This document shows positions 16,497-46,317 of a DNA stretch of 64,000 nt, piece by piece. The notes below the pieces were generated by a model. It made no database searches and was not told where the DNA came from. It saw only the letters and a list, made by a program, of their open reading frames with translations. The DNA lies in NCBI RefSeq assembly GCF_006345805.1, contig NC_043005.1:10850001-10914000 (forward strand), given 5' to 3'. The number at the start of each line of letters is the position of its first letter. Position 1 is the first letter of the stretch. Source of the stretch: Octopus sinensis (lineage: Eukaryota). The position numbers were made by a program, and so were the translations under genes.

Positions 16497-17619
16497 GTAA
16501 TGCAGTCTTTATCACCCACTCCACTTCATTGCTAATTTTTGATGTCTTTTTTTAAAAAAAAAGAAAATTTATCGACATGCATGTTACAACACAAAGACAA
16601 CGAAGATTTACAAATTCCCCAAAAATATTCTTACCATATCATTATTTCACTAATGAAAGAATTAAGGATTCACTTGACAAAATGAATTATTTTCCCTGTC
16701 TGCAGATGAGTGCAGTCCAAACTCTCTCTCTTTCTCTCTAAGAAGAAACAGTATTTTATACACACATCAACTACAACATACTTATTTCAGTACACATTGA
16801 GTAAATACAGGAATATGTATTTCCCCACTTAGAAGATAAATTCAGGTCAGTATTCAGATTCTGAATATTACCACAAAATGGCCTTATAATGCATCATTCA
16901 TTTAATTTCTGTAGAGTTTCAATTTTTAGCAATCAACACAGCTTAGCCTATATTTCCACAGAGTTAGCTTTGTACCAGAAACTTCCAAATCTCACCTGAG
17001 ATGTAATAGGCCTCTACTTTCACTCCTCTAAAATACTTTACATAATGAAACTCTAAGAATATATTAGCTTCAGCTAACAACACTACAACAATACAAATTC
17101 CATCATCATGGCCTGTCTTCATTGGCATGTTTCATCTGACATGTTCCTTACATATTGTAGCATTGCATGTAATTTGGGCTAAATGTCTTTGGAAATTTTG
17201 GGCTGGAGAACCTATCTCCCTGAACACGTTTGGTAATCTTTAGTAGTTGAGCTAAATGGGTGTGTTGTCTTGTGCCTGCTTGCACCAAACTTCTATACAT
17301 GTATGTATATGTCTAGTGTAATTCTGGTTCTTGGGATGTGAATGTCATTGGATATCGTGTGGACGACAAGTCCAAATGTCCGAGTTGTTACTTGCGGACA
17401 CTTAGATGCATTTGCTCGTTATTATTACCTTTTTAAGAAAAAAAAAAAAAAAAGGTTGCATTTGTTGCATTTTTCTTTTACTTTCTAATATAAATCGGGG
17501 ATCAAAAAAGGTGGGGAGTTTTGCTGAAACAATTTTCAAATAAATTAACCTCCTAAGGGAAAAGGGGAAAAGAAAAGAAGTGCTAACAAAAAGTATGATC
17601 TTTTAATACATATACATTC

Positions 17620-17667
<48 letters not shown>

Positions 17668-18902
17668 AATGTGTATATATATGAATGTGTATGTATACAC
17701 TATTGCATGTGAAAATAAAACAAGGTTGCATTCTTTTCCTTTTCTTCTTTTCAATTAACCAAAAGCTTTGATCAAAAATTGTTTAAAGTTTTATTATTAT
17801 CATTATTATTATTATTATTTAAAATAAATCTCCAAATCAAAACGCCAGGTGTATTACTAAGCACAATTTGTTGATAAAAATCTTAGAATACAATTTTATT
17901 TTTAAAACATTAGTTTTTGAGATTTTCATAAGCCAATTTAGACATAATTTCATAATTGGTATCATCAGTATTACTTCTAAATTTTTGTTAAGAGGCAAAA
18001 AAAAGTCTTCAGAAATTGTTTCAGCTTGACTACCAAGTGCAGTTCTACAAAGTAAATTGGTCAAGATTAGTCAGATAACTTTGGTCAACAGCTCCATTTA
18101 GTGCCATAAACAATGTGTCTCTGAAACCTGCATTACTATTATAACTACTACTACTTGTGTGTCCAACATTTGTATGTGCACATATATGTGTGTATACTTG
18201 TGTGTGTGTATGTGTTTCTTACTTTACAAAAAGGACGATTTTTTTTGTTGAAACTTTGTTAAAATTTAATTTAATTATTTTTTTCTTTTTTTACCTTGTT
18301 TTGCTTATATTTATTCAGATTCCAATACAATATGTATTTCAATACCAAATGGATTATTATAAATACACAATACTAATATCAGAGTATTGAATCTATCTTT
18401 CTTAACCACAGGGAACAAATTCGTGGAATTTAGTGCAATATTTCAGCTTTCATCATTGTGTTGTACCAGATTTTTCAATCCAATATTGTACAAAATAAGG
18501 ATTATATACATCAAATTTTACAATTTGCTGTACACCTTTCAACAGATTATATTATGATGTGTCTATGTGTGTGCCTCTGCATAAATGTAAGTGATTATAT
18601 GTGTGTGTGTTTGTATGTGTATATGTAAAAAGTGCTGCATAGGGTTCAAGCATGTAGGATCAATTAAATTTTTATGTATGTATATAAGTAGATTAGAATA
18701 TGAAAAAAAGCATAATTACTAAACCCTTTATAATCATAATTGTGCAATGAATAATACCATATGTATTGTTTGAGGTAACACATTAATTATATTTGCTGTG
18801 TATGACTGGCATGGCTAGCTGCCTGATCATTATATTAGCTGATTCTTAGGGGATTTTCAAAGATATTTCAAAGTTGACAGTTGATATAAATTTTGACTTC
18901 TA

Positions 18903-19520
18903 CGAGGGGCATTCAATAAGTAATGCCCCTGACCCACTTCCCATAGCAGTAGAGCAACGACACTTGGCACAGTTATTAGTCTTTTTCTACATAGGAACCA
19001 CCCAGAGTTACGCATTTCTCCCATCGTTTGATGCAGCTCTGGAGACTGTTTTTGTAGAAGACCCCAGCTTGGTCCTCCAACCATGACGTGACTTCAGAAA
19101 TCAAGGCTGCATCATCTGGGAAACGCTTTCCTTTCAAATACAATTTCATGGCTGGGAAGAGGTGAAAATCAGAGGGTGCAAAGTCAGGAGAGTAGGGGGT
19201 GGATGGGGGAGGAGTTCATAGCTGCACACCTGTGCTTCTGATCTGGCGACACGCGTGTTGTGGACCGGAGCGTTGTCCTGCAGGAGGAGGATGCCTTTGC
19301 TGATCTTGCCTCGCCTCTTGATTTTGATAGCTTCTCTTAATTTCCTCAAAAGTGAAGCATAATAGTATCTATTTATGAGATGGAAGCCATTCTGTTTCCA
19401 AAAAGAACACAATCCCATTTCTGATTAGTCTTGCAATGGGGAATTTTGAACCTTAATGTCATGTTCTTTACTTCATCACATCGATTACTAGATGAAATCT
19501 AATAAAACTCTACTTGTACA
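18903..19520 (-). mobile_element. Mariner (D,D34D) transposon relic, 3' half with frameshifted transposase
   Basis: TA + CGAGGGGCATTCAATAAGTAATGC terminal repeat at 18901; minus strand reads LLQDNAPVHNTR..PHPP/YSPDFAPSDFHLFPAMK..RWEKCVTLGGSYVEKD* (stop 18976-18978), with 34 residues between the two Asp and a +1 frameshift at HPP. Confidence 0.92.
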
Positions 19521-20481
19521 CAACTCAAGACCTGCTATTCCTTTAAAGCTTTTTAAGACTTCTGTCTTTAGTCCACAGCTAAACATTTGCTAATGTTAGC
19601 AATGCTTTGTATGCACATATAGATTATCTTTACATTTTCTTTTTTATTCTTTATTTGTCATACTACTTTTAGAAATATTTACCCATTAAGGATAGAAAGT
19701 CTCTCAATATGTTGCTTTTGACATGTAATTATAAAACTAAATTAAACCTGTTGATGTTGCTTGAGGGTTGTCCATTTTAAGGTTAAGATGAATACTCTAC
19801 TTCCTCCAAAGTAATTGCAAACGCAAAATATCTTTTATGCTGCTAAGAACAAACTTGGCTCTGGTTTCATAGCATTCAGTGGGTGAGTGATAATTTTTTT
19901 CCAAGACTTGACTTCAGCTTATTTCTGATCTGATAAATATTCTTGACAACTGGCCTATGTCAGTTGAAGTGATGAAGAACAAAATGGTCTGCTTTGTAGC
20001 ATCTATAAATAAAGAATAGTCCACAATTTTATCCATTCAGTCATGGTATGTCTTAGAATGTTTCTGATTAGTGTTTCAGTATTTAATCCGAGTTCTCCTG
20101 AGATTTTCCTTCATTACCTGATAATATCTAATACTACATATATTGTTGGATCAGCCTATTTAAACTTCTATATGGGAGATGGAGGTCTGCTGTTTTTGGT
20201 TTTTGATATATATATATATATATAACTAAACTAAACTAATGTTTATTTATTCCTAATCACTGCTTGGTGCTGTTGCTGTTATTTTTATTCTGAGCAAGCA
20301 GTCCTCTAGTGCAACTTTAACTCTGAATCTGCTGGAGATTATCTCACTGGTATTTCCTATTGAAGAAGGCTAAAACGCTAGAAATGTATGTCTGGGAATC
20401 TAACAGCAGTAAGGACTCGGCATATATAGTGTCTTTACATCTACTATAAAAGAAATTCTCTACGTTTCTGAACTAATCTCA

Positions 20482-20518
<37 letters not shown>

Positions 20519-20521
<3 letters not shown>

Positions 20522-20816
20522 CGTGACCGACTAGGCTATCAGATGTAGTTACACATCGCTGGTCACAATGCGTTCGCAGTTTTAGCCTTCAAATGACGCC
20601 ACCCCGCTGGCTACGCGAGCAGGCCAACAGAAGAAAGAGTGAGAGAAAGTTGTGGCGAAAGAGTACAGCAGGGATCGCCACCACCCCCTGCCGGAGCCTC
20701 GTGGAGCTTTTAGGTGTTTTTGCTCAATAAACACTCACAACGCCCGGTCTAGGAATCGAAACCGCGATCCTACGACCGCGAGTCCGCTGCCCTAACCACT
20801 AGGCCATTGCGCCTCC
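20519..20816 (-). mobile_element. SINE family C head/body with a different 3' tail
   Basis: 20630-20816 is the reverse complement of the family C head; 20519-20625 does not match the tail of the 12296/48558 copies. Confidence 0.85.
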
Positions 20817-20870
20817 ACACACACACACACATATATATATGTATATATATACACATATATATATATATAT

Positions 20871-21262
20871 AGGCACAGTCATGACAATGTGGTTAATAAG
20901 TTCATGTGGTTCATGTTCAATCCCAAAATATGGTACCTTGGACAAGTGTTTTCTATTATAGCTCTGGGCTGACTAATACCTTGTGAGTGAATCTGGTTAA
21001 TGGAAATTTTGTGGTAACCCGTCACGTATGCATATATGTATTATGTGATGTGTGTAGCTCTCTGTTTCCTACCCCTACATTGCTTGATGATCAATGAGGG
21101 TTTGTTTTATGTCCTTGTAACTTAGTAGTTCAGCAAAAAAGAATGACAATAAGTACCAGGCTTTAAGAAAATGAGTACTGGGGTCAGACTGTTGGATGAA
21201 ATTTTTTCAAGGCTGTGCTTCAGGATGGCCACTGTCCAAACACGAAACAAATAAAAGATACA
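20871..21262 (+). mobile_element. Old degenerate SINE family A copy
   Basis: Diverged but colinear with family A. Confidence 0.65.
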
Positions 21263-21407
21263 AAGTATTACATCATCATCATCATTTAATGTCCATGTTC
21301 CATGATGGTATAGGTTGGATGGTTGGACGGATCCAGTGGATCAGAGGACTGTGTCATGTTCCAGTATTTGTTTTGTCATGATTTCTATGCCTGGAATCAT
21401 CATCACC

Positions 21408-21596
21408 ATCATCATCATCGTTTAACGTCCGTTCTCCATGCTAGCATGGGTTGGACAGTTCGACCGGGGATCTGGGAAGCCAGAAGGCTGCACCAGGCTC
21501 CAGTCTTATCTGGCAATGTTTCTACAGCTGGATGCCCTTCCTAACGCCAACCACTCCATGAGTGTAGTGGGTGCTTTTTACGTGCCACCTGCACAT
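21408..21596 (-). mobile_element. SINE family D fragment
   Basis: (CAT)n tail plus family D core. Confidence 0.85.
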
Positions 21597-23860
21597 CCCT
21601 AATGTCATCCACTTTGCAGTGGGTAATGGCTATGTTTTTCCATTCCACCTTGCAAGACAAACTCCAAGGTTTGTAGGTGCTAGGAGATGATGGGTAAAAA
21701 GTATGAGAAAAAGTGGCTAAGTGGAACTGGTTTCTTGTTGTAAAGGCACTAGCTACATGACTATTGACATAGTAGAAGAGTGTATGGTAGTGGTCAGAAG
21801 AAGCTGGAAAGGAGTAGAAATATTGGTGATGATGTCTCACTCTGAGTGGTAGACAGAAATTAGTGTTGCTAGGAGACAAGTATGTGGCCTGGGGGGGGGG
21901 GAGTAGGCAACTCTCCAACAATGCAAGTGTTGGAGTGAGAGTAGGAGATGGCTGACAGTGTGGAATAGCAGAACAGTAATACTGATTTTAAATGGCCACA
22001 GTCAAATGACTGAAACAAATAAAAAAATATGTGTTCACATACACATTCAACTAATGTTTTTGTAAAGAATTCATGATGCAGTCATACTATTTGAAGGAAG
22101 ATTTTCTCAAATTAAAAATTTTTAATCATATTAAAAGATCTTCAAAAAACTAAAGGACATAAACCTTTTAGAAGGAAGTTTCCATATTGAGTTTAAGTGC
22201 TTTTTCCCTTTACAGCTTTTCAAACACACGTGTTATGGGGTAATTCATAGAGAGGAAGTTATTTTTATAGTGTTGTTGATGATTTCTGGTCTAGTTTTGG
22301 ATTTAAAATTCTTATATGGTATTCTTCTCTTGCCTTTTATGGTCGATCATTTTCTTCCTTTGAAAATAGGAAATATGTTTCAATTTCCCATTTGCACAAA
22401 TGTCTAGTTGTTCAGTACATGGAACATTTCAAAGAATTGAATCTTTGATTTGCTGCTTATATACCCTAAGCCAGTGTATTAATTTTCATCCCTTTTGGGC
22501 AATATACATCACATTGCATTATGGGCATGTGATGTAGTAAAGGAGATTTGTTTTGTTCTGTTATTTTGCAATTTGTAGTTCCGTTAGCCTTTCTCTTCCT
22601 TCCCATTCTGGAATGTTTTCCTTGTTCCCTTTTCAGATATTTCATATGTTTGATGATGAAAGGTCTCTGCAGCTGGTTGCCAGCATTATTTTTTTCCTTT
22701 GACTTTTATTATATACCTGCGTATGTGTACATCCATACACATACGTGTGAACGCACAAAACAAAATAGTCCAACCCATGCCAGCATGGGAAATGGATATT
22801 AGATGATGATGATGATGATGATGATGACTACTATTAGAAACATAGAAGATTGGATGCTAAACCAATGGGTGATACATAAGGCATAGCTATGTGGTTAAGA
22901 TGTTTGCTTCCTAACCACACGATTTAGATCCAGTCCCTCTGCATGACCCTTGGGTTGATATCTTCTACTATAGCCTAAAGCTGACCAAAGGCTTGTGAAT
23001 GGATTTGGTCAATAGAAAATGAAATATGCCCATTGTGTATATGTGCAGTGGTTTAATTTCTTTTTACACCTATTGAAGAAGTGACTGCTTTGTGCTTCAC
23101 ATTGCCACAGTTTCCTCTATGACTTCTGCCTTGCTCTTACTTCTGGAATGTACCTAAAGTCTTTGATTCTCTTTAAACTCTTTAGAAATACTGAGAATGA
23201 AGAACAGCATAATTATTACTATATACATCTTAACTGCATTTATCATTATTCTTCATTATCATTATCATTGCTCTCACCTTCATCTTCATTATTCTTATTA
23301 ATTGCTACATCATTTTGTATTCATTTTCGTATAATGAATATAACAAAATTTAACATTAATTTAAGGCATTGTTTAATTAACCTGCATCGCGAGCATAAAC
23401 ATAGTTACTGAATTATCTCAGTACGTCTTTATAATTAAAAAAAAAAAAAATGGAAGACATTTAAAAAAAAAATCCTGTCATGTAAAGAAACGCAACTTCT
23501 TTTTTTTTTTCCTGTTTATTTTTGTTTTATTTCTAATTTTTTTTTTTTTCAAACTTCAATATTTATTTTTCTAATCCTCAAATTCATCTATTAAATTAGT
23601 GTTTCAGGTTTTCAACAAGCTATTTGATTGTGGTGGGGGAATCAACAACACTCACAAAACACTGAATACATCCACTTTATTTTTGCTTCATCATATAGAG
23701 CGCAAACCGAATGGAATAATAAAATAGCATAAACATGGGTAGAGAGCATGTCTAGCTAAATTTTGGCACTAACTGGATCTGTTTTATACCACCTTATCAT
23801 TCTTGGCTCAATACACCTATAACGATGCATTGGATTTCTTTTTTTTTTTTGCCTGCTGTA

Positions 23861-23902
<42 letters not shown>

Positions 23903-24621
23903 TGTTATATATAAATATATATATATGTTATATATATGCGTATATAGGATATATATATATTTAATATATATAATATATATTATATATATGTTATATATAT
24001 ATATATTATTGATATATGGATATATGTAATAATTTACATATATGATATATAATATATATATATATATACACACACACATATATATCTTTTTTTTTAATTA
24101 TTGATTTCTGCCTATGGATTTGTTGTTTATGTGCGGGATGTTCAAACACTTGCATCATTTCGTATTGCTGAAATCTCTTGTGTGTGTTTCAGTTCCAGTG
24201 AATAAACCTGTTATATTTGATCGTAAGTAGTTCTGAAAAGTATGGCATTTATAATATTTATTATTATTATCATTATTAATAATATTACCATCATATAAAC
24301 CTCCATGTCTTTATACAGTGCTCCTATATGGTGCATGTTGCTGCATATTTTTTAAAATATTTTTAGTAGCCTGAAGTCCTGTAGATTGTGACTTTCAAAT
24401 ATCTTCTGACAGTCTTGAACTGGCCTTTGTTTTTTGCATCAGTTATTACTTGTATCAATTTTGTCTAGCGTACGTACATGTAAATTTTTGCGCTGCCGCT
24501 ATATACTACTGCGAAGATGCCAGCATGCTTGCCCTTTGCTTTGATCTGCTGCCTGCTGCTGCTGCTGCTGCTGCCGACGCGTTGCACTGCGCGATCGTTA
24601 CAAATCAGTTTCTTTCTGCAG

Positions 24622-24660
24622 CGATGGATGGACTGAAGACCATACATCCTGATATTGCAC
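24622..24660 (+). CDS. Candidate 39-nt cassette exon in the FN2-FN3 linker (AMDGLKTIHPDIA)
   Basis: tttctttctgcag acceptor, GCAC|gtaatc donor, phase 1-1, no stop; preceded by a CpG-rich island with a (CTG)n/YGCY cluster. Confidence 0.5.
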
Positions 24661-25411
24661 GTAATCCATCCTGGGTTTACCAGTCCAGTCTTTGTCCATT
24701 GCCGTGTTTTTTTCCGAGTGATCTTCCTACTGTTTTCCTCCCTTCTTTCCAACGGAGCTATGCACACTTTATTTCAGCCATTATCTGCGAAAAGGTTTAC
24801 ATACATACATGTATGTACGTGTATGTGTATATATGTATATATATATATATATATATATGTGTATATGTATATATATGTATGTGTATTTATGTATGTATAT
24901 ATGTATTGGGGGAAGGGTGTTTGGTTTTAGTTTTTAGTTTTTTACCTTCTGTAAATAAAAAGAATATTTTTTTATTATATGGAAAAAAATTTTAAAAATT
25001 GCATCAATTCTGAAGGTCGCTGCTAATTTTAGCTAAAACTTTAAAAGTCCTAAGTTCTTTTATATGTGTGTATGTCTGTGTGTGCACACAATAAATATAT
25101 TCACTCACACACGCGCAGACATATATATATACACACACACACACATACTCTCTAATTCATATGTACATGTATACTTATGAAAGTGTATGTATATACTTAT
25201 AATCGTACACACACATACATATATGTGTGTGTGTGTGTGTGTGTTTATCTGTTAGAGAGTTAAATTTTTTTTTTTCTGTTGTAGTTTCGAAGTTTATAAT
25301 TATTTAATTTTATTTGGTTCTGATTTTCTTTTGATAATGGATATTATTCAAAATTTTGCAATAGGTTTATTTTACAAATGTACATCTAATATACACTTTT
25401 TTTTCGTTAAG

Positions 25412-25424
25412 ACTGGAGAGGAAG
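25412..25424 (+). CDS. Candidate 13-nt microexon ACTGGAGAGGAAG (frame-shifting alone)
   Basis: CTAAT branch point ~22 nt upstream, T-run, ttaag acceptor, AAG|gtggtt donor; purine-rich. Confidence 0.3.
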
Positions 25425-27569
25425 GTGGTTGGTAAAAGTCTTCCCTCCAATATTTACCTCTTTCTTTCTTTTGTTTTTTTTTTAAAGTAGTCTGGACATT
25501 AAGTCGTATTAGTTTTATTGACATCCTCTAGCGATGGCATTGTAAAAACAAAAAGCCTTGTCTAAAGACTCTTCAATTTATTTATTTTTATTTTCCTTTC
25601 CCTTCTTATATCAAACAATATTATTTTGATTAAAAGGAATTTCAATATATTAGAAATTATCAAAAATGTTATTTACAAAGTCATTTTTTGGCCTAAAATT
25701 TGGATGAAAAGATAATACAAATAAACATATTTATAAAAATATGAGGAAATCAATTTAAAATTCTGAAAAAAATAACTGAATAAAAGTAATGATTAAATGA
25801 ATTTTCTATTATTCTTCTAAACAAACTGTATTTTAAGATGTTATGGGATTGTTTTACTTGTGAAACAGTTGTGCATAGTTCCTGAGGAAGTTTTTCACAA
25901 CTTTTATTTCATAAAGTGTAGCCATTTTCCACCAAAATGCTTTTTTTCTTGTCATGCATATAGTTTTACTGAGATACATTGAAAAATTGTTATATTTATA
26001 AAACTTTTATGAAATTCTAGCGTAATTCAGGTGGTTGGAGCTGAAAGAAAAACCTCATTTCATAAGCTCTTATGCATTTTTTATTTAATACTTAAATTTA
26101 AGCAAACAGTGTGATTGTATGTACATGAGTCTATATATGTATTTATGTATACTTGGTTATATACATATGCATGCATATGTTATGTGCCTTTATACATATA
26201 TTCAGACAGTATACATTAATTATCAGAAAAAGGATTGTAAATGCCTTGAATTCAACTAATGATCTAACTTCATAACTAAAACTGATTGTTTACCAAGTAA
26301 ACAGCTAATAATGTAGACTAAAAAATGTTCCGCTATCTCATAGTATGTAAATTTAGCTTGTATCCTTTTTCTGATTTATCAGTTGTTATGTAACTTAACT
26401 CAATTGGTAATCTCTGCTATGAGAATCTAATTGTAACTATACATAGTAGTTTACAGATATTAAATTGTTAACTAATAGATCTAGATTAATAAGTGACAAC
26501 AGTAAAATGGCTGCTTTACTGTCTTTTCCTACTGCATAATAGTAATAATAATAATAATAACAATAATAATAACGATATTAAATAATACTAAATAATTATA
26601 ACCTCACAAACATGTGTGCTGAATTCAAAGATTTGTGATTTCAAGAGATTAAATTGGCTTTTCACAAAAGTTTGTGACTATTAAGTTTAAGAATAATTCT
26701 TAATCTAACTGCTTGTGTGTAACATCACATACACATCTAGCTAGTTATGAAGAACCTATGTCTTTTCATTATAGTTCATGTTTCTTTCTTTTTTTTTTTT
26801 TTTCACCCTTTCCTGGTGATCAGAGCTGTGTGCAGTCTGTAACTTATATCCTGTGACATTTGACATATTCCAATATGTTTGTCTCAGTTACATCCACACT
26901 AAGCTCTTGCATATGATTGCTATACATTTTTTCCTCCTGATCTTAAATTCCTACATTCTACAGTTTGAGGTGGACAAGATGTTCATAAACATTTTGCCTC
27001 AAATTCTTGTTACAACCTTAACGCAGAAGCCGCACCTTATACTTTTCTTCTAGCGCTTTCATTTCATTGCTTTACTGCTCTCCTTTTAGTGTAGGATAAA
27101 TAGCTTCTCTTCTCTCTTCCTCATCTTCCAACTTCTACAATGGATTACTAGCTATATTAATGCGCTATTGATGACTATGTTTTGGGGATTGAAATTTAAT
27201 TCTTTTATGATTTCTTCTAGATCATTCCAAGACCGAAGAAAAACAAAATTTTACTTTATTCTCATTCTGAGAAAAGAAATATTCTGGTTTACACTTGAGA
27301 AATTTATATCATGTGTTTTCAATGTCTATGCGCATTTGCTGTAAAAATATATTTTCCTGCAATACTTACTTATTATTAACAACATGCTATGAAGAAATTG
27401 ACCTGCTTAGTTACAAGTTTATAAGTCAGTGCTATCCTGACAGTATTAAAAGCGCAGTTTATTGGAGAATAGTTTTCTCTAGCTTACTCATAGATCCCTC
27501 CCCATGTATTGTGTAGTTCATCTATCTAACTATGCTGCTCAGATATTATGCTCTTGCTACATAGGGAAC

Positions 27570-27965
27570 TATATATATATATATATGTATACGTGTATAT
27601 ATATATATATATATACATACATATATTTATATATATATATACATATATATATATATAACTATATATATATATGTATGTATATATATATATGTACATGTAT
27701 ATATATATATATAACTATATATATATGTATATAGTATTCATATATATAGTATTCATGTATGTGTGTATATATATATATATATGTGTGTACACACACATGT
27801 ATATAGTATTCATATATATAGTATTCATGTATGTGTATGTGTATATATATATATATATATAATATATATATATATATGTACACACACATATATGTATATA
27901 GTATTCATATATACATGTAAATATATATGTATATATATATATATATAATCATATATAATATTCAT

Positions 27966-28039
<74 letters not shown>

Positions 28040-28130
28040 TACATCTCGTTCGGAGATTTATTAATGCTTATATATATATATATATATAATATGAATATGT
28101 ATAATAGTCATATATATACATGAAATTTAC

Positions 28131-28167
<37 letters not shown>

Positions 28168-28341
28168 ATACACACATATACATATAATGGTTATATATAT
28201 ATATGATATTCATAGATGCATACGTATATAAGTACATACATATATATAAATACATATGTATATATGCGTGTACACTTGTGTGTGTGTATATATAAACAAA
28301 CACATATATACATGTGCCTATATACAATATATGTATATATT

Positions 28342-28375
<34 letters not shown>

Positions 28376-28720
28376 AATGCTTATGTATATATGTGTGTGC
28401 ACTTGTGTCTATATATATATATATATATATATAAACACATATATACATGTGCCTATATACAATATATGCATATACACATATGTATATACACACACTTAAA
28501 CATATATGTATGTACATATATTGATATATTATATGTGTATGTATATATATGTTTATATATGTGTATATCTGCATATTTAAGTGTATATGTGTGTATGCAT
28601 ATGTATATACATTTATTTATTTATATATATTTATGTGTATGTGCATATATATAATTATATATACACACTCACGCACATATTTATGTGTGTATATACATAC
28701 ATATATATATATATATATTG
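27570..28720. repeat. Large compound (TA)n/(TG)n/(CA)n microsatellite field with local tandem re-duplications
   Basis: Near-continuous TA/TG/CA dinucleotides, pure (TA)n around 27969-28036, repeated TATATAGTATTCAT blocks. Confidence 0.95.
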
Positions 28721-28993
28721 AGCTGCTTGTGATTCTTATTACTGATATTTTTATACCTGCCAATTTATTAATGTTCAGCACACATGGAAATAGTTGAATA
28801 TTTAGAAAATATCTTGGTATTTTCATCTTAGTCAATTAATCTGAATGTAAGGCTTGATTGGTAATTAATAAATGCGCGTGCGCAGCCTTTCTCTTTGCAT
28901 ATAATGTACCATTGATCGCTAATATTAACACCATATTTTTCCTATTCATTATACTAATCTTCGTTTTTCCTTTTTCCATCCATTGTCCTGCAG

Positions 28994-28999
28994 AATCAG
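28994..28999 (+). CDS. Candidate 6-nt microexon AATCAG (inserts ES: NPG-ES-VPQQP)
   Basis: TACTAAT branch point at 28952-28958, AG-free pyrimidine tract, ctgcag acceptor, CAG|gtgagg donor, frame-preserving. Confidence 0.6.
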
Positions 29000-29538
29000 G
29001 TGAGGCCAATTACTAAACTTTCTAATTTCTTTTCAGCACATAATTTATGTATATTTTTTTTTTACCACTATCATTAATTATACATATGTATTTTTTTTAA
29101 AATTTTAAGCTAATCTGCAGAATAATGCATTAAGATTCTGCTACTTGATGCAATATGATTGTAGCAGTAGTTATTTCGTCCTTTTTTCATTTTTTTTGTA
29201 TTCGTTCTTTTTCCTTTTTTTTTTCCTTCTTTTGTAATCAAAATAATTACCTATAGTTTTTGTTTTTTGTATTTTTTTTTTTGGTTTTTTGCGTATGTCC
29301 TTTACATGATTTTGAGGGGACATTCGTGAAAACACTCTGAAAGAGTGAGGTGTAGATTGTTATTTTTGTTTCGTGGCTTTGCATTCTCTGCCACTTGTTC
29401 CAATTTATGATGTGTGTGTCTTTTTTTGTAATATATTTGTTCTCTTGTTCTTTTACTAACATCTTAGTGTTAGGTCTAAAACTCTATTACTAACCCCCCT
29501 GCCCATCAATCGTGGCTAATTAAAACAATTACTGATAG

Positions 29539-32545: not shown

Positions 32546-32565
32546 TTAAAAAATTTTAATAATTT

Positions 32566-32920: not shown

Positions 32921-32953
<33 letters not shown>

Positions 32954-33129
32954 GGTATGTCCACTTACTGTGAACATCCGAAAGATAAGACCAGCTGCCC
33001 ACTAACAGTATAAACTCCATATAACATAATCTTTTGTGTTGTGGTGTGTATGCATGCACACAACAGCAAGAGCTCCCATTAAGTCATTTTTATCAACTGT
33101 TCAGAAAACATCTTAAAAATAGTTGATAA

Positions 33130-33700: not shown

Positions 33701-33725
33701 GAGTGGTAATAGCATATGCGTATAT

Positions 33726-33772
<47 letters not shown>

Positions 33773-34867: not shown

Positions 34868-34900
<33 letters not shown>

Positions 34901-35499: not shown

Positions 35500-36093
35500 T
35501 CCTTGTGGTACCAGTGCCGGTGGCACATAAGAAAACCATCCGAACGTGACCGTAGCCAGTACCGCAATGACTGGCCTCCGTGCTGAGGGCACGTAACAAA
35601 CACCATCCGAGCGTGGCCGTCCGCCAGCCTCGTCTAGCACTGTGTCGGTGACACATAAGAAAACACCATCCGAGCGTGGCCGTCTGCCAGCCTCGTCTGG
35701 CACCTGTGTCGGTGTGGCACATAAAAAAACACCATCCGAGCGTGGCCGTCTGCCAGCCTCGTCTGGCACCTGTGTCGGTGGCACATAAAAAAACACCATC
35801 CGAGCGTGGTCGTCTGCCAGCCTCGTCTGGCACCTGTGTCGGTGGCACATAAAAAAACACCATCCGAGCGTGGCCGTCTGCCAGCCTCGTCTGGCACTGT
35901 GTCGGTGGCACATAAAATCACCCACTACACTCTCGGAGTGGTTGGCGTTAGGAAGGGCATCCAGCTGTAGAAACACTGCCACATCTGACTGGCCTGGTGC
36001 AGCCTTCGGGCTTCCCAGACCCCAGTTGAACCGTCCAACCCATGCTAGCATGGAAAGCGGACGTTAAACGATGATGATGATGATGATGATGAT
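35500..36093 (+). mobile_element. SINE family D with internal ~64-bp tandem array
   Basis: Units start at 35601, 35664, 35730, 35794 and 35858 (CACCATCCGAGCGTGG..), plus a diverged unit near 35536; family D core and (GAT)n tail. Confidence 0.9.
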
Positions 36094-36489
36094 ATATATA
36101 AGGCACCTAGCCATCAAAATCATGCCAAAACAGACACAGTAGCCTGGTGCAGTCTTCTCCCTGGCCGGCTCTTGTTAAACCATCCAACCTATGCCAGCAT
36201 GGAAGACAGATGTTTAATGATGAATGTATATATTTATACACATTTAGACAAGCAGTTTTAACACACAACATCAATGTATAAAGTTTTCTGCAAGCATTTG
36301 TGTTGTTATCAATGAGTACACTTTTAATCACAGGCATTCCATTTGTGATCATGTTTTTTTTTTTTTTTACCTTTAAACATACTGTGTCTATTACTTCATT
36401 TTCTAGCTTTTTTTTTTAAGGCTGTGATGTTTTGTTTGAGAGGTAGTTAGCTATTTATAACCACATAGAAGCTTACTTACTGGCTCATG

Positions 36490-36977
36490 AAGGGAATAGT
36501 TTCAGCATCTCGAAAGAGTCCAGAAGCTGGCTACCCGCATGGTTCATGGTCTCAAAAATTTGTCCTACAAAGAAAGGCTGAGGACGCTCAACCTTTATTC
36601 TCTTGAGAAACGCCGCCGCCGTGGTGATCTCATTCTCACCCACAACATCATAAGCGGAAAGTGTAACCTCTCGAAAGAGCTGTTCTTCACTCCTGCTCCA
36701 GAGCGTCGGCTGCGGGGTCATTCCGAAAAGCTCTACCTGCGACGATTTCATCTCAATCGAAGGAGAGGAGCTTTCTCCGTCCGGGTTGCGGATCCGTGGA
36801 ACAAGCTGCCAAACGAGATGGTGAAGATGCCGACGACCGCTTTGTTCAAAGCCTCCCTGGACCTCAAGTGGCCTGAACTCTATACATGAACACCACCCTG
36901 TACTTAACTCCATGTCCCCCTACATGGCCTTGCTATTTGCTTTTGAGCCAAATTAACTCACTAACTAACTAACTAAC
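36490..36977 (+). mobile_element. CR1/Jockey-like LINE 3' end (5'-truncated, open ORF2 C-terminus)
   Basis: QHLERVQKLATRMVHGLKNLSYKERLRTLNLYSLEKRRRRGDLI..LRGHSEKL..FSVRVADPWNKLP, typical CR1 ORF2 end; (TAAC)n tail. Confidence 0.93.
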
Positions 36978-37170
36978 ATGGAAAGTTTCTTCTCAAGCTG
37001 TTGGTGAGACCCAAGTCAGCTTTGACTGAGCAGAATTATGATCAGAGGAATTCCTACCATGACCACCCTATCTGTTTGCTTTTCTATATCAAGGATTACG
37101 TTATGCAACATATCTATTTGTTTTTTTAAGACAGTAGGTAAAGAGTGTATTGGTATTAAGTTATAGTTTT

Positions 37171-37407
37171 AAGGCGGCGAGCTGGCAGAAACGTTAGCAT
37201 GCCGGGGGAAATGCTTAGCGGTATTTCGTCTGCGTTACGTTGTGAGTTCAAATTCCGCCGAGGTCGACTTTGCCTTTCATCCTTTCGGGGTCGATAAATT
37301 AAGTACCAGTTACGAACTGGGGTCGATGTAATCGACTTTATACTTATGTCTGTCCTTGTTTGTTCCCTCTGTGTTTAGCCCCTTGTGGGTAATAAAGAAA
37401 TAGGTAT
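37171..37407 (+). mobile_element. SINE family B, full length
   Basis: AAGGCGGCGAGCTGGCAGAAACGTTAGC head, B box GAGTTCAAATTCC. Confidence 0.92.
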
Positions 37408-38999
37408 TTAGTGATAGACCATTTCATTCTCATTTCAAATCTTGCCATGGACATTTTTACTTTTCATCCATCCAGGGTCAATGAAGTAAAATTGTGGTAT
37501 TGATTTAATCAAGTGTTTCGCAGGCTTGTTCAAACAACAGACTACGACTGAGAATCCTAAAAGGATATCTGTTGTGCTTTGCGCACATTAACAACAGATG
37601 ACAGTATAAATCCAGTGGCATTAGTTTTCTTGTAATATCAGCTATAGCAGACATTAACTTTGATAGGCATAACGGTGGATCACTGCTGCACAAAACCTAT
37701 AATTAATGGTGATATACGGCATTTCTGTTGGCAGAACAGGGTGCAATTTCAGAAGGATTTGGCTGTTATTTCATTCATTATGTTCTCGGTTGGTCAGTTG
37801 GTCAAACGGTCTGTTCTTTTAATTTGATTCATAAATTGGAACAATGTGTTGGTGTCTGCTTGTTTTGTTTGTTTGTTCGTTTTTGATGTTTTTGTGTTTT
37901 TTGTTAGTTTCTTTTTTTGTTTTTGTTGTTTTCCTTTTAACTAGCCATTGTCTCAATACAGAAGCATGCATTATGTATTCTTGCGTTTATTGCGCTGTTC
38001 AAAGTTACATCTCAGTTGAATTTAGCAATTTATTTTGCCCCACACCCCAATTTTTTTTTTCTAATCTCTCCTTTTCTCCCTAAACTTTACTTCTGGTATA
38101 TAATACACTGGCTTCCATGTTTTGTGCAGTAGTAACTAACATTTCATTCAGAACAACCAGTTTAGCATTAAATAAATTTTCCCAAGTAAACAGCTAAATA
38201 AACAGCAACTGTGTATAAAATGTATGTATGTGTTCATGTGTATATGTGTGTTGTTTGGAAGCACAAAAAGTTGTACCATTTTCATCAAGTTCTAACCATT
38301 TTATAAATTTATATGTGTTTATATATATATACACATATGCGCGCGTGTGTATGTATGTCTGTGTATATATATTGTGTGTATATAATTTACTTTGAGTGTT
38401 GAGATTCTTGCATTTAACATTAATGTAGTTAGAAGGCCCCTTAAATTGTCTAGTCTGAACATTCTAAATATATTAGTATATATGTGTATATTTGACAATA
38501 CTAAAACAATGTTAAAACTATATCAAATAATCTGGAAGAAAATATAAGAGATTTTCAAATGTCTTCGATATTTTTCTTCTTTAAACAACTATTTAAACTA
38601 CAAGTGTGATTAAAGTTTAGTGTCATAGTAATGATAATGATGATGATCATAATAATAATTATAATTATAATAAACAATTGTAAATAGATATATAATTAGT
38701 TAATATAATTCTCTTGCTGAAACTAGCTGCAATATTTTCAAAATTATTTACCCTAGTAATTATATTTTCACTTATTAGTTATGTAACACATATTTGTGTA
38801 TGTGTGGGTGTGTGTGTATCCATGTACACACAGACACAAACATGCACTTTTTTTTTTTTGCGTCTTAGCATGTAGTAATATTTTCTAAAATATGTTCCTA
38901 AACTTAAATTTTTAGAGAAAGACCTCTTTAAAATGAAAGGTTACTGTTTGTTAAAAAAAAAAAGTGTGTTGTGTGTGTGTAGTTATGTAAAATTATATA

Positions 39000-39191
39000 T
39001 TCCTTTATACATAGACATCTGCAGATACACATATACATTCTATTATTCATATAGGCTTATATTTACATCTTTATATGTATATCTGCAGTTATACATACAT
39101 ATATATATATGTGTATATATGTATTATATATATGTACATTTATGTATGTGCATGCCGGTGTGTGTGCATATATGTATTTTATTTATATATA

Positions 39192-39235
<44 letters not shown>

Positions 39236-39887
39236 TGTACACATACATACACACACACATTCACACACACATGCATATGCATAGTTACATGCATATCTGT
39301 ACACAAACACAAATATTCACATGAGATTTTAAGCTAAGTTGTAGTTACAGTGTGTTTGCATACATTTTAAATATAAGGTAGTATTTATAACCTTCATATC
39401 CATTAATAAATAGGCCTCCTCTCAGCCAACTCCTCCTATAAACATGTAATTTAATGTGAGTCCCACACTGTATGTATTTAATTAATTCTAAGTATATTTC
39501 ATATTGCTAACTTAAACTTGCTTTTGAAACTAGGTTTCTTCTGTCTCATAAATTCTGCTGTTTACTATGTTTATAGCTGTACTATTTGAGTGTACTTCTT
39601 GCCCCGCTTGCTGCGTTGTTGCGCGGCTATGGGTTGCAGCTGGTATCTTCCTAGCTAGCGCTCTGCTCTGCCAAACACGGAAGACCATCGCAGCGGTCTT
39701 CTTGCTGTTGCTGCTGCTACTATAAATATTTTAAAAACATGTTGCATTAGTTGCCCAGTGTCTAGACTGCTACGAAATAGTGTAATCTCTTTTTTTTTTT
39801 TTTTTATTGACATAAAGGTCAGCTCAATAGATTTAAATGCTAACAAGTGACACAAAAAATATATATATACACACATGTATGTATGTG

Positions 39888-39920
<33 letters not shown>

Positions 39921-40380
39921 GTGTGTGCATATATATGTACATATATATATATATATGTATATATATATATTGAGCTCAAAAGAAGAAAAGAACTGATGCA
40001 CCATTTTTTGTGTTTATTGGGTCAATACACTTTGGTAGGTATTTTGGTTCACTGCCAGTTTTACATAGTGACTTTAAAAAAAAGAAAACAAATCGACCAA
40101 ATAATTTTACTTTATTTTAACACTCTTTTCCTTTTCTTTAATGACGCAACTTTTGACAATTTTGTTTTCAAAATTATAGTTTAATTTATTTTGAGTCTTC
40201 ATTTTATATATAATTACACACATATATGTATATAACATTCGTATAAACATATATATATATGTTTATATATGTATATATATATATTTTCACACATACATGT
40301 GTATGGATACATAATATATATACACATACATGTGTCTGTATATGTGCATATATGTGCGATTAAGAGTGTATATATGTGTA

Positions 40381-40415
<35 letters not shown>

Positions 40416-40458
40416 GCATATGCTCATATACATATACACCACATATATACATATGTGA

Positions 40459-40504
<46 letters not shown>

Positions 40505-40535
40505 CTGTATGTATATATATATATATATATATATG
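39000..40535. repeat. Cluster of compound TA/TG/CA microsatellites surrounding a unique GC-rich island (39540-39790)
   Basis: Dinucleotide fields at ~39000-39300, 39860-39970 and 40200-40535. Confidence 0.85.
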
Positions 40536-41796
40536 ACATTTTAGTTTTTCCTTACTCTATTTCTGTCTTTGTTTTCATTTCTTATAACTATTTTCCTTTT
40601 CTTCTATTAAAACTTTTTTCTTTTGTTTTTCTTTTTAGTTTCAAAGATTTTTTTTTTTTTGCAAACTATTTTCTCAATTTTTTTTTTTGGTTCTTTTTCC
40701 TTCATTTTTTCCTTTTGTTTTTTTATCAACAGACAAGAATGACGATGTCACTTGAAATTTAATTGTTATAATTTTTTGACTCCTTTCTATTTAATTTTAT
40801 TTATTATTTTTGACGAATTAAGGAAAAGTCATAATCTACTGATATATAATAAATATTACTTCTTAAAAAGGGTGGGACACAAAATTTTTTCTTTTTTTTA
40901 ACTTTTAATTATTTATAATTATTTTTTCCATTCCAGTACACACATGCAAGTGTTTTCAGTTGTCTGTATTTTGTTTAATAATTGATGCAAATGTTAATAT
41001 TTAATTACTAATTAAAGTATTAAGCAAGCACAAGATGTCACCCAAATCAAAACTTAAGTGAATAAGAAAGTAAATCCAGTAAGATAAAGGAAAAAGTTTG
41101 TATAAGTACACTCAAATGTAACTGCAATGCACCCTTTCAGTTCCAATGCACTTGTGCCCACTTTATACATTTTGAGTCTACTTTCTTACTAGTACACCAA
41201 AATATTATTTTAAATAATGTTAATTGCAAATAACAATTAAGACAAGCAAATGCCTGAAAAACCACTTTTTAAATTAAAAAAGAACCTTTTAATCTACTAT
41301 TGTTTTTCTCACATATCTCATAAAGTTTCATCAACAGTTGCCATTACAGATGGCTTCCTTATCTTCATATATATTCATATATATGTATGTATATATTTAT
41401 ATATATATATATAATATATTATATATGTTTTCATTCTAGTAGGTATTTTCATACTTTATTTATTATTTTTTTTATTTGATGTCTTGGGTGTAGAGCGGAA
41501 TATTTAGCTAAACTGAGAGGGTTAGCTTTTCAAGTAGGAGACATATTCCAAATTGCAAAATCTTTCGCATCTTCTTAAAAGAAATGACTATTTCAAAGCT
41601 GAACTAATATTTCTTTTGCATCTGTTCAAGACAACAACAATAATTCAAAGTATGTGTGTATATATTTATGTATACAAAGATGACAGAGATAGTTTCAAAC
41701 ATTAAAAGTAGCCTTTTTCATAAAGTATGATAGTCTCTATCAAAAGAAGACAAAGTAAATAAAATAAAAGTAAAAATGCTGCTTTGTTTAGACTAT

Positions 41797-41842
<46 letters not shown>

Positions 41843-42136
41843 CAACAACAACGTATGCAAATGAATTTTGTATTGACTAGGATATACTGTTTTATTTTAT
41901 TTTCATCTCTTTCCAAATATTAGTTAAAATAAATCTCAAATAAATAGTGGACTAAATTCAAGAATAAGGCTGTGTTAGCATTCTTGGAAGAGCAGTGTTG
42001 TTTGATGTGAATATTCATCCTGTATGGTTAAGCTGTTTAATCCATATAAGAAGTACCAAATCATCTCCAAGTTATATTTCCTTTGCCCCACTATGAGATG
42101 CTTGTGTCCAATATCATAATTACATAAGTATATATA

Positions 42137-42167
<31 letters not shown>

Positions 42168-43944
42168 ATTTATATATGTAATAATGGCCACAATTCACGG
42201 TTAAGTAGAATATCCAAGATACGTGAGTTAGGTAAAAGTAAAAATGGAGCAGTGTGTGTGTCTATGTGTGTGTCTTTTGATTGATTAGTTGCTTTCTGAA
42301 AGGAACATTCAAATCCCCATTACCTCTGTGTACAAGAAATACTGAATTATATTATGTATGTGTATGTGTGGGTATGTACCATCGTGTACTATGATAAGTG
42401 TGTGAATGTACAATTTCTGTTCTTGTGTAACACATCCCAGAAGACTCACAGTATTTCTCTATTCTTTGTTTAGTCATATTTTTCCTCTTGTACAGAAAGA
42501 AACCTTTCTCAAGGTTTCGCTATAGAAATTATCCTGTAGAGTCTGGTAAAGAACATTGTCATGATTTTTTATAATTATTACACTTTATTAAAATGCTAAT
42601 ATCTTAGTTGAGTGTTTACCATCAGAAGAAGCTGGATAAAGTGGCATTCATTCAATTATATATAACTCTCTATATTGCACTTATCCAGCAGAGTGAGGAA
42701 AAAATATATTTTTCTCCTTTTGATGAAAGTAGAAAAGGATAAAAAGCAAAACGTGGTACATTTTATATTTTATTTTCACTGAGATGTCACTTGTTCCTTT
42801 GTTTTTTATTAGAACAGCCATTGATAGTTTATTATTACTTTGATGAAACAAAATCTTGCATAATAATTATGTGATTAAAAAAATGAAGGTATAAATATAT
42901 AAAATCTCACAGTAGTTGAGAGAAATTCAAAACATTCCCATGGAAACATTAAATTGTAGTTTTGAAGAATCAGATAACATTGAATGAAATATTGTTAAAA
43001 TATTATGAAGACATGTTTCATCAATGTATCTTTTTATATTCATTCATTGATTGATTCATTATTATTATCATTTTACTTTAATTATTATCATTATTTAGAA
43101 GAATGCATCTATGATTTTCCACAGCATCTACTAATGTTCAATTTAAAAAACATGTTTTAAATTATTATTATTATTAACTAGCTAAAGAAGTTCATTGTAA
43201 ATGAATGATATCTTTAACTGTAAATGAAATTGGAGGAGAAAATGAAGAATTGTACATATAAACTATCATTGTATCTAAAGTGTATAGTGTTGCTGTATTG
43301 TACCTGAGCAATTTTGCTATTATCAATTATTTTATTGTAATAGCTCAGCATTAGCAATAGTTAGTTTTATTAAATTTGTCTAATTTCATTTCCAATATCT
43401 GCAGTTTGTTTAGAATTAATCAAATTTTAGCGTAAAATATAAATTAATAAAAGTTTTAAGAGACTAGTAGTAGTTTGAATATTTGGTAGGTAAGCCAAGA
43501 TGGATGATGCACAAATGTCTAAATTATCTTAAAAGAATTCAAGAATGGCTCTCCATACCTTGAACAAATTGCTCTTTACTGTGCAATAAAATTAAATGTA
43601 AATCAGCTATAAATTATCTTCATAAATAAAATAAGTTTTCGTGGTGGACTTAATTGCTTTGTGTATTTTCTTCTTTAAGGAGCTGCAACCAAGATGTGCT
43701 AGGATTTTCTTTATTAGTTTGTGAGGTCCTTAATTTCACATTGTACGTTTCTGCCAATGGCATCAGTGTAGTTCAGTGGTTTTATCCTCTTTTAGGGTGC
43801 AGAATTCTCCAAATTATAACATCTGATGTGACTTGTTGTTTCAGTATGAAAGCAGTGTCCATCATTAATTTCCTTAGATTGTTTTTCTTATACTGTAATA
43901 TTAATATTATCATTATTATTACTCATTTCATTCAAATTTACATT

Positions 43945-44085
43945 CTGAGTTCAAATTCTGTTGAGGTTGACTTTGCCTTTCATACTTTCAGGGCCAATAA
44001 AATAAGTAGCAGTTGAGGACTGGGGTTAATGTAATCAACTTACCCTCCACCCTAAAATTGCTGGCCTTGTGCCAAAATTTGAAAT
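43945..44085 (+). mobile_element. Degenerate SINE family B-related fragment
   Basis: gagttcaaattctgttgaggttgactttgcctttcat..aaaataagta..ctggggttaatgtaatc. Confidence 0.7.
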
Positions 44086-44453
44086 TGTTATTATTTTCTT
44101 ATTTTATGTACTATATTTTTTGATGGACAAATCAACTCAAGGCCTTGTTAGTAAAATAGGATAAATGGAAACCCTGTGGATGCCCTTTATGGCAGATTTA
44201 TCCCATTGCCTGGTTTACACCACCAGATAGCCATTGGGTGCCTTTAGCTGAGAGATGATAAATAAATGCTTGATATCAGATTTATCCAACAACCTTCATC
44301 TGCAATGGCCTCCAAAAGTTGGCTGTCCTTTAGTTCCTCATACATCAGTGCTATTTCAGTTTTCATGTAAATAATTTAAGCTTTTTAATTCCACAGAGGC
44401 CTTCTAGTCCATTAGAAGCCATACTATTGCTATAGTAACAGTTTTTATATACA

Positions 44454-44790
44454 TCATCATCATCATCATTTAGCGTCCGTTTTCCATGCTAGCATGGGCT
44501 GGACGGTTCAACTGGGGTCTGTGAAGCCGGAAGGCTGCATCAGGCCCAGTCAGATCTGGCAGTGTTTCTACGGCTGGATGCCCTTCCTAACGCCAACCAC
44601 TCCGTGAGGGTGCTTTTTACGTGCCACCCGCAGCTGGCAAACGGCCACGAACGGATGGTGCTTTTACGTGCTACCAGCACGGGGGCCAGGTGAGGCTGGC
44701 AACGGACACAAACGGAGGGTGCTTTTACGTGCCACCGGCACGGGGGCCAGGCGAGGCTGGCAACGGACGCGAGCGGATGGTGCTTCTACA
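44454..44790 (-). mobile_element. SINE family D with short internal tandem units
   Basis: (CAT)n tail, family D core, repeated GGTGCTTTTACGTG units. Confidence 0.88.
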
Positions 44791-46317
44791 ATATTATTAT
44801 AATGCTAGTAATGATGTTGATGATAATATGAAGATGGTCTAAATACTCTTACTCAACACCACAACTATTCAAATATATCTACTGTATTTACTAAGTACAG
44901 GACTAAAATCTAACTGAGATGAGTGATTAAGTTGAAGACTTTGGGCAGGTGAAAAAAGCTTATTAAGTGTTCTTTTGAAAATTTCTACAGTAATAATAAT
45001 ATGTGGGGAAATCCTTTAGTGTATAAGAATATTTAATGCAAATATAGGGGCTCTAGTCTGAGGATAACTTTCCCTCTTTCTCCCACTAATGTTGGGGTTA
45101 CTGCATGAATGTCTTGGAATCTGCCTTTCTATGGCAGAAAAAGACATAAGGGAAAATAATGAACAAATAAAAGTAGATGAGTAAATAGTTTGTTGATCTC
45201 TATGTGGATAAAGTCAGTTCTGCTGCTGAATTATCTTGGTATAAAAACTATTATGAGGCAGACTTTGTAACTAACAAGTGAAATTCATCACCGAATATAG
45301 GAAAACTCATCACATCTCTTTAGGGAACAGTTAATATGCATAAATGATTAAAATTGATAAGTGATGTCTTAATAATTAAGAAGAGTACAGTAAATGTAGT
45401 TTCTTATTACATCAAGCTTTTACTTTTTTTTCCTATTATCAAAGATGTTTTTTTTATTCTTTTATATCTTTGAATATATGTATTTATAGAAATACTGAAT
45501 CTGGATATTTACAAGATAATTATCTTTCGACACTTTAAAAAGATAAACTTTCTGTGTTTATTAAAACTGTTTAGTAAAATTATGACATAATTACGAGACT
45601 GAAATAAAAATTGAAAATAATAAACTTTTTTTTAGAAGTCTTGATATTTAGATAATAGACAACTTCTAGTATATTTATTTACATCTAGCTGCAGTTTCCT
45701 TTTTCTTCTCTCTCATTTCTTTTTCCCTCTCTTTTATCCTCTTCTTTTTTTTTTTCAACTTTCTCTCTTACATATACACAAATCCTTAGATAGCTTGGCT
45801 TAATGTCTTTTGTTTCCTTTTAATATTTGGAGCATCTATCTAGCTTAGCTGAATGAAATAATTATAGTAATCCATATAAGATTTATTATGATTTAAATAA
45901 TGATAGTATGATTTTTTAGTTCCATTTGTGCTGTGTATAAACCTGTGTATAGACAGGGAAATAGTTTGGAATTATCTGGCTCTTTGGTGTTCATCTTCGC
46001 TGTAAATGTTGATGACTTGTGTGTGGATTAGCCACACATTCAGTTGCTGAACATTTAATATGTGACTACACTAAACAAGTATTGTCGACATTTTCTCTTG
46101 GTTGATAATCTTGATTATTTAGCTTCTCAGCTGGCACCAAAGTTTAGTGTACTCTCGTCAATAGAAAGATGCTGTGGACTTGTGTAATTTCCCAATAATT
46201 CATAGTTATGTCATAATATTTGTCTTTTCAACAGCAAAATCATTTTCTTTAAAAAATTTCCATTATCTAATCATTATTATTTTTTTTTATTTTTTTATTT
46301 TACATTCTTTGTTATAG

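Follow-up and report, generated by a model that had tools for sequence, protein, structure and literature searches.

A candidate six-nucleotide microexon in the FN2-FN3 linker of a LAR receptor gene of Octopus sinensis

The 64-kb stretch of Octopus sinensis DNA analysed here (contig NC_043005.1, hereafter the window) contains part of a LAR-family receptor gene, including the exons for the second half of FN2 (exon A) and for FN3 (exon B) and the long intron that separates them. Within this intron lies the element in question, a candidate 6-nt cassette microexon at 28994-28999. It is located in the fourth of five intronic islands (islands 1-5), which a sequence-only reading of the same DNA had proposed to form a combinatorial microexon cassette. 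The parts of the gene and the elements surrounding the candidate exon are as follows; a slash marks a splice boundary and negative numbers count back from the first nucleotide of the candidate exon.

16295-16496, + strand: exon A, second half of FN2, upstream constitutive exon; protein GYKIFYTLNPDLP...IQVMTNPG; ends in phase 1, gga g/gtaatg (cct gga g)
16497-46317, + strand: FN2-FN3 intron, 29,821 nt, phase 1
28886-28991, + strand: AG-free zone of 106 nt preceding the candidate 3' splice site; within the top 0.9% for the 7104 AG sites
28952-28958, + strand: branch-point-like UACUAAU, -42 to -36
28959-28988, + strand: pyrimidine tract of 30 nt; 84% pyrimidines over -35 to -4
28989-28991, + strand: UGC abutting the AG, -5 to -3
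28994-28999, + strand: candidate 6-nt cassette microexon AATCAG, in island 4; ...ccattgtcctgcag/AATCAG/gtgaggcc
29000-29013, + strand: 5' splice site GTGAGG followed by CCAATTAC
46318-46602, + strand: exon B, entire FN3, downstream constitutive exon; starts ttatag/tc ccc; protein (V)PQQPKNLQ...IQVRTPQF; ends in phase 1

Joined to each other, exons A and B read ...IQVMTNPG-V-PQQPKNL.... The combined peptide (residues 1-159) aligns end to end with PTPRS (4pbx, 420-574, E 1e-39), PTPRD (4yh7, 430-586) and PTPRF (6tpw, 142-299), with E values from 1e-39 to 3e-36, while other FN3 proteins score far lower than these three. The following exon (about 55473-55790) matches residues 302-402 of PTPRF 6tpw, corresponding to FN4 (E 2e-33). 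These alignments to FN2b-FN3 and FN4, together with the exons themselves and their colinearity with PTPRF, PTPRD and PTPRS, bear out the earlier description of a 30-kb phase-1 intron in the FN2-FN3 hinge of a LAR receptor. The full-length models P0044 and P0034, genes of relatives that exon B brought up, comprise three N-terminal Ig domains and two cytoplasmic phosphatase domains, and the exon B boundary is common to all related loci. The exon A protein is 100% identical to P0002, derived from Logan contigs. The nearest DNA reached consists of two Logan contigs (SRR11869390/91), 89% identical and covering exon A plus or minus 1.2 kb only; an NCBI match (P0001) is a 383-bp contig.

All AG and GT dinucleotides were scored with simple acceptor and donor weight matrices, composed of approximate metazoan consensus frequencies. 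Scored in this way, exon A has an acceptor of 9.8 bits and a donor of 7.3 bits, and exon B has an acceptor of 5.2 bits and a donor of 9.0 bits. The candidate microexon, with an acceptor of 10.9 bits and a donor of 13.4 bits, exceeds the real flanking exons at each site, and the acceptor plus donor sum of 24.3 bits is the highest on either strand of the window. With a first-order Markov model as null, the probability per 30 kb of a maximal sum of at least 24.3 is 0.003, and that of both sites reaching at least 10.85 is 0.013. Neither the rest of the window strands (98 kb) nor a set of 92 further LAR loci (889 kb, both strands) contains a pair that reaches either value, the maxima there being 22.4 and 10.0. 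The 3' splice site has the branch-point-like, pyrimidine and UGC elements listed above. A composite filter required an extended AG-free zone, a pyrimidine content above 75%, a CUAAY branch point, a UGC at the 3' splice site and, no further than 30 nt away, a strong donor. It is passed by one of the 7104 AG sites of the window (both strands), namely 28994-28999; its thresholds were set after the site had been seen, so this result is descriptive.

In its longer context the site reads ...tatactaatcttcgtttttcctttttccatccattgtcctgcag/AATCAG/gtgaggccaattac.... Inserted in phase 1 (G/AA TCA G/TC), the six nucleotides introduce no stop codon, keep the frame and would add Glu-Ser to the linker (...MTNPG-ES-VPQQP...). 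The predicted inclusion junctions are ...AATCCTGGAG/AATCAG/TCCCCCAACAG..., and the k-mers predicted for octopus transcripts are AATCCTGGAGAATCAGTCCCCCAACAGCC for inclusion and AATCCTGGAGTCCCCCAACAGCC for skipping.

Further evidence is provided by the same intron in other animals. Invertebrate LAR loci were retrieved with exon B from ENA and from JGI metagenome assemblies; a metagenome scan with a single protein gave nothing, and one with an alignment query gave 80 loci. The whole FN2b-FN3 intron is present in six loci, and several more hold 2-5 kb upstream of FN3. The strongest sense-strand donors were listed within each intron, and every locus except L075 has a strong sense-strand donor, usually the strongest one, with a short exon before it and an extended AG-free zone before that exon. 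These exons are:

Locus L005: exon TGCGTCCAG, 9 nt
Locus L019: exon TCAGCCCAG, 9 nt
Locus L043: exon TCGGCCCAG, 9 nt
Locus L004: exon CTGGCTACCAAG, 12 nt
Locus L001: exon TGCCAGCAATACCGGGTTCAG, 21 nt
Locus L075: exon TTGGACCAG, 9 nt, weaker donor
Seven partial loci: exon TCGGGCCAG, TTGGGCCAG, TCGGTCCAG or TTGGTCCAG

The length of every counterpart exon is divisible by three, and each can be read in phase 1 without a stop. Where the intron is complete (six cases, octopus among them), the exon is located 34-47% of the way in (octopus 0.42), with an AG-free zone of 36-127 nt, and positional counterparts are present in at least seven lineages. The best represented is a 9-nt exon encoding Val-Gly-Pro, present in 12 metagenome-derived invertebrate loci. 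This family, AG/TNGGNCCAG/GTGAG (pattern AG-N5-CCAG-GTRAG), is found 13 times along the gene strand and is absent from the opposite one. Its variation is found mainly at exon positions 2 and 5, the third positions of the GTN (Val) and GGN (Gly) codons, with positions 1, 4 and 6-9 invariant (GTN-GGN-CCA); such third-position variation is the signature of a translated Val-Gly-Pro insert. The sequence AG/GTGAG is unchanged in 14 of 14 aligned sequences, that of octopus included. Conservation in this group extends into the 45 nt that precede the 9-nt exon (alignment A2). About 45 nt 5' of this exon, loci L034, L038, L050, L060, L061, L064, L068 and L075 carry a conserved intronic block, TGGTTGTATTGTACGAACGACGGCTGTGCAG, which is purine-rich, accompanies a weak 3' splice site and may be a regulatory element.

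Elsewhere in these genes there are more short AG..GT segments with strong flanks. Segments of 54 nt each are located 3' of FN3 on the gene strand in L048 (18372-18425) and L053 (13902-13955), and a 16-nt segment is present in the FN3-FN4 intron of L001, L002 and L003 (L001, 11246-11261). They may be further small exons.

The bivalve Sinanodonta woodiana provides a named counterpart. Its FN2-FN3 intron of 14.3 kb contains, before one of five strong donors, the following exon:

14483-14491: 9-nt in-frame exon, ...cttttcacattccatcattcag/ACAGACTAG/gtaagccaattac...

When the octopus 91-nt region was compared with the whole mussel intron and the 80-kb locus by unbiased local alignment on both strands, the best match fell exactly at this 9-nt exon. 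The aligned elements are ttccatcattcag/ACAGACTAG/gtaagCCAATTAC in the mussel and ttccatccattgtcctgcag/AATCAG/gtgaggCCAATTAC in octopus. The octamer CCAATTAC follows the microexon donor directly in both species and has a single sense-strand copy in the 64-kb window and in the 80-kb locus; the motif TTCCATC(C)ATT upstream of the exon is likewise common to both. These similarities are suggestive of orthology of the octopus and mussel elements but do not decide it.

The site 28994-28999 is thus a predicted splice-competent, in-frame segment of 6 nt, and it has a probable counterpart in other phyla that is conserved and bears the marks of translation. The best reading of the locus, to which a probability of about 0.6 can be assigned, is that the FN2-FN3 linker is served by a single old, unannotated 6-nt cassette microexon in an otherwise ordinary long LAR intron, and that this is neither a combinatorial code nor an invention of octopus. 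The earlier suggestion that the FN2-FN3 hinge, a place with no described vertebrate mini-exon, contains a microexon thus survives at one site, 28994-28999, but not at the other islands. The accompanying idea that octopus Lar may have evolved a separate code is not supported, since the exon appears common to a bivalve and many other invertebrate LAR loci and so would be old rather than specific to cephalopods.

According to this interpretation, some transcripts would have exon A joined at the AG of 28993 and exon B joined to the donor GTGAGG of 29000, so that Glu-Ser would be added to the short FN2-FN3 linker with the frame kept. This would change the length and flexibility of the hinge, and with them how the N-terminal part that binds ligands is spaced or oriented with respect to the FN domains near the membrane. 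By analogy with meB and the FN5 exon of vertebrate receptors, the altered hinge would affect how the Ig1-FN2 module is presented or how the FN domains bind. Judged from the 3' splice architecture, the most likely regulation would be neuron-enriched inclusion dependent on eMIC/Srrm234. The octopus exon would represent one version of an old element, which takes the form of a 9-21-nt in-frame exon in the same intron of the bivalve and many other invertebrates. A more far-reaching proposal, which we hold only tentatively and regard as somewhat less than an even chance, is that of an ancient microexon predating the mollusc-annelid split, spliced in neurons under eMIC/Srrm234 control and acting as a hinge-length switch that gates FN-ligand binding or synaptic cis-clustering. 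Its length would have drifted, being 6 nt in octopus, 9 nt in the mussel and in worm-like hosts and 12-21 nt elsewhere, and it would constitute a further ectodomain splice site beside vertebrate meA, meB and meC.

Several observations weigh against the single-microexon interpretation. Use of the exon in octopus is something we infer from sequence, and the weight matrices are approximate, so that only comparisons with identically scored controls carry weight. The octopus-to-mussel alignment score of 31, against a shuffled-query 95th percentile of 30, is borderline if taken alone, and in the search from the mussel core the octopus element is the best sense-strand match but its score of 25 is not significant. 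The mussel exon is located 83% into its intron rather than at about 40% and encodes DRL, as against ES in octopus; more generally, peptides (ES, DRL, AGYQ and VGP) and exon lengths vary by lineage. BLASTN and local alignment of the octopus element against the distant introns, and of the introns all-against-all, revealed nothing significant. Queries of the protein collections with the open reading frames of the microexon region and of the islands gave no match, and the searches yielded no other cephalopod sequence over the site. Finally, FN2 is joined directly to FN3 (...QG/VP.QP...) in representative LAR-like proteins retrieved by exon B, among them the models of Sinanodonta (KAL3869070.1) and Elysia (RUS75353.1) and a transcript-like protein of 1771 residues on a 6.7-kb contig (P0064). 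The exon is therefore alternative, missed by annotation, or both; non-use would fit these models too.

Non-use is the core of the strongest competing explanation, namely that 28994-28999 is a decoy pseudo-exon. A pyrimidine tract, an AG and a consensus donor would by chance have come to adjoin in an intron rich in T, the site would never be used, and its look-alikes elsewhere would be unrelated. Unused splice-like sites are plentiful in long introns, and the window itself offers an example. The second-best pair (44634/44678-44689) was discounted because it sits in a 61-nt tandem repeat (44633-44789, 2.6 copies, G+C- and CpG-rich), in which a perfect consensus donor at 44690 (CAG/GTGAGG), clearly a decoy, produces the second-best false microexon. 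The antisense strand attains a sum score of 22.8, and most other loci have no significant nucleotide alignment to the octopus element. However, the candidate exon is in frame and stands apart from all the controls. Its intron is the one that in other phyla carries a constrained coding microexon, its relative position there is similar to that in five other complete introns, and the donor-proximal 8-mer CCAATTAC is common to the mussel exon. A decoy is accordingly considered unlikely.

Less probable still is a recursive splice site, at which exon A would first be joined at 28999/29000, a 5' splice site would be regenerated and nothing would be left in the mRNA. The intron is far longer than the 10 kb above which recursive sites occur in fly, and such sites have juxtaposed 3' and 5' motifs around AG/GT (PMC6110457), as found here at 28998-29001, where the intron would be split into 12.5 and 17.3 kb; moreover, Ubx microexons take part in stepwise splicing (PMC6110457). 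As a zero-length site, however, its acceptor part scores only 3.7 bits and ranks fifth in the window, and the AG favoured by the pyrimidine tract and the AG-free zone is the one 6 nt upstream. The multiple-of-three lengths and third-position variation of the relatives indicate a translated segment, and a pure ratchet point needs neither. The best zero-length AG/GT of the window is found at 32955 (ctctctctctctctcacacacag/gtatgtcc), on a CT/CA microsatellite; it could be a recursive site or due to chance.

The multi-island proposal, in which several islands are microexons used in combination or yielding truncated forms, has very little chance of being correct: each island does have at least one AG...GT pair, including a 39-nt in-frame pair at 24622-24660, and island 1 is an unusual unique CpG-rich stretch, but the antisense strand has as many pairs and as large a fraction in frame, the best donors in islands 1, 2, 3 and 5 (3.3-6.2 bits, frames mixed) are below those of both real exons, island open reading frames lack homologues, and a second strong candidate was found in none of the orthologous introns.

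At equal moderate thresholds, the intron contains 67 AG..GT pairs 3-66 nt apart on the sense strand against 58 on the antisense strand, of which 18 and 20, respectively, are in frame; an AG followed by a GT, often in frame, is therefore expected from any strand here. The claim that each island holds a 3' splice site followed by a GT within 3-66 nt is literally true but not above this chance level, and the claim that most pairs preserve frame is wrong, the in-frame fractions in islands 1-5 being 1/4, 2/6, 5/12, 2/4 and 2/4. Apart from the donor of the candidate exon, island donors score 0.3-7.0 bits, compared with 7.3 and 9.0 bits for the real flanking exons. The islands are non-repeat in having no second copy in the window, but this holds for 73% of the intron. 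The CpG observed/expected ratios of islands 1-5 are 0.91, 0.60, 0.35, 0.65 and 0.72 (intron mean 0.46), so that CpG retention is confirmed for island 1 and moderately for island 5, islands 2-4 being unremarkable; the CpG-rich stretches of the window are mostly repeats. No protein homologue was found for the open reading frames across the microexon or for the 26 frames of all five islands used as one query, and the island frames match no Pfam family. Islands 1, 2, 3 and 5 are best read as background sequence and their AG...GT pairs as due to chance. With nothing above background in four of the five islands, a combinatorial cassette is not supported.

Island 1 (24450-24800) is the sole unique CpG-rich stretch of the intron, with a GC content of 46% and a (CTG)7 run. 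An open reading frame of 39 codons at 24517-24636 (MPACLPFALICCLLLLLLLPTRCTARS...) resembles a signal peptide and has no homologue. This island could be a promoter, an enhancer or a remnant. The idea that it supplies a signal peptide as a first exon used alternatively was considered and rejected, because there is no usable donor in the right phase and a stop follows after 39 codons.

As a whole, the FN2-FN3 intron consists largely of AT-rich unique sequence, interspersed with microsatellites and with tandem and dispersed repeats. No Rfam family or tRNA was found in it, and an RNA-fold test of the region gave nothing. Among the long intronic open reading frames, Pfam analysis revealed only a sub-threshold mariner transposase remnant, and a 206-codon open frame over island 1 belongs to no family. 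Other features of the window are listed below.

19149-19424, - strand: mariner-type transposase remnant (PF01359, E=0.001, under the curated cut-off)
27570-28718: (TA)n/(TG)n microsatellite of 1.15 kb, directly 5' of the microexon island
23893-24070, 24805-24906, 39859-39970 and 40222-40534: similar microsatellite arrays
35598-35917: tandem repeat, 64-nt unit, 5 copies, G+C- and CpG-rich
About ten copies across the window: dispersed repeat with an open reading frame containing ...FDCGHAGAPPL...

Other parts of the gene also contain potential splicing variants. The exons opening FN2 (9916/9922) and FN4 (55473/55479) both start cag/CCCCAG/G, with two in-frame AGs 6 nt apart, and tandem acceptor use there would add or remove two linker residues (Ala-Pro). 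An acceptor of good quality is located at 46690 (ttccatttccttctcag/GTGTCTCG), 87 nt 3' of exon B, and is followed by an in-phase frame of 40 codons to a TAA; it might define an alternative terminal exon giving a secreted Ig1-FN3 form. As to the truncated forms predicted by the sequence-only reading, no supported frame-shifting or terminal exon was found.

Splice inserts of vertebrate LAR-family receptors decide their postsynaptic partners, and all the well-studied inserts are in the Ig region; for the FN-region insert meC, we know of no established synaptic role. Were an insert in the FN2-FN3 hinge conserved in molluscs and other invertebrates, splicing that alters the hinge length of this receptor would predate the vertebrate code and be more widely distributed, and the nervous systems of invertebrates, the large brain of cephalopods among them, would employ another site of the same molecule. 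An exon of 6 nt is missed by standard gene models and aligners, and the exon is absent from the mussel and sea-slug models; exons of this kind can be recovered by looking for outlying splice signals and comparing one intron across phyla.

The known mini-exons of the LAR family are meA in Ig2, meB in the Ig2-Ig3 linker, meC inside FN5 and meD before D1 (PMC8711739; PMC12598525). The candidate exon is located in the FN2-FN3 linker and so is none of these. Neither a published description of a mini-exon in this linker nor one of cephalopod microexons in a LAR gene was found, and the candidate is probably, by its sequence features, a neural-type microexon of the LAR family at a site of its own. Its closest parallel is meB, likewise a very small cassette exon that keeps the frame; the 4 residues of meB enter a linker between two domains of the ectodomain and alter ligand selection via linker geometry (PMC8711739; PMC12598525). 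The two are not orthologous by position, meB being between Ig2 and Ig3 and the octopus exon between FN2 and FN3, and they differ in size, the insert comprising two residues in octopus and three to seven in other invertebrates. The octopus exon would work like meB, although of the two only meB has a known ligand dependence. The vertebrate exon meC (LASE-c) is likewise a small alternative exon in the FN region of LAR, and its inclusion abolishes laminin-nidogen binding (PMC2133008); FN-region mini-exons can therefore matter. In contrast to the candidate exon in the hinge, meC lies inside the FN5 domain and in another intron.

Exons dependent on the eMIC domain are reported to have an extended stretch free of AG, a UGC close to the 3' splice site, a long run of pyrimidines and a strong branch point of the CUAAY type (PMC8797185). 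With the eMIC/SRRM neural microexons the candidate shares a length of no more than 27 nt, frame preservation and cis architecture. Its 3' splice site is, however, strong, whereas that of fly eMIC exons is very weak; its 9-nt relatives have a weak, purine-rich one. Recursive splice sites likewise combine strong juxtaposed 3' and 5' signals in the middle of introns longer than 10 kb (PMC6110457). The octopus element differs from them in the 6 nt that separate its main AG from the GT, in the multiple-of-three lengths of its relatives and in the coding constraint that these relatives display.

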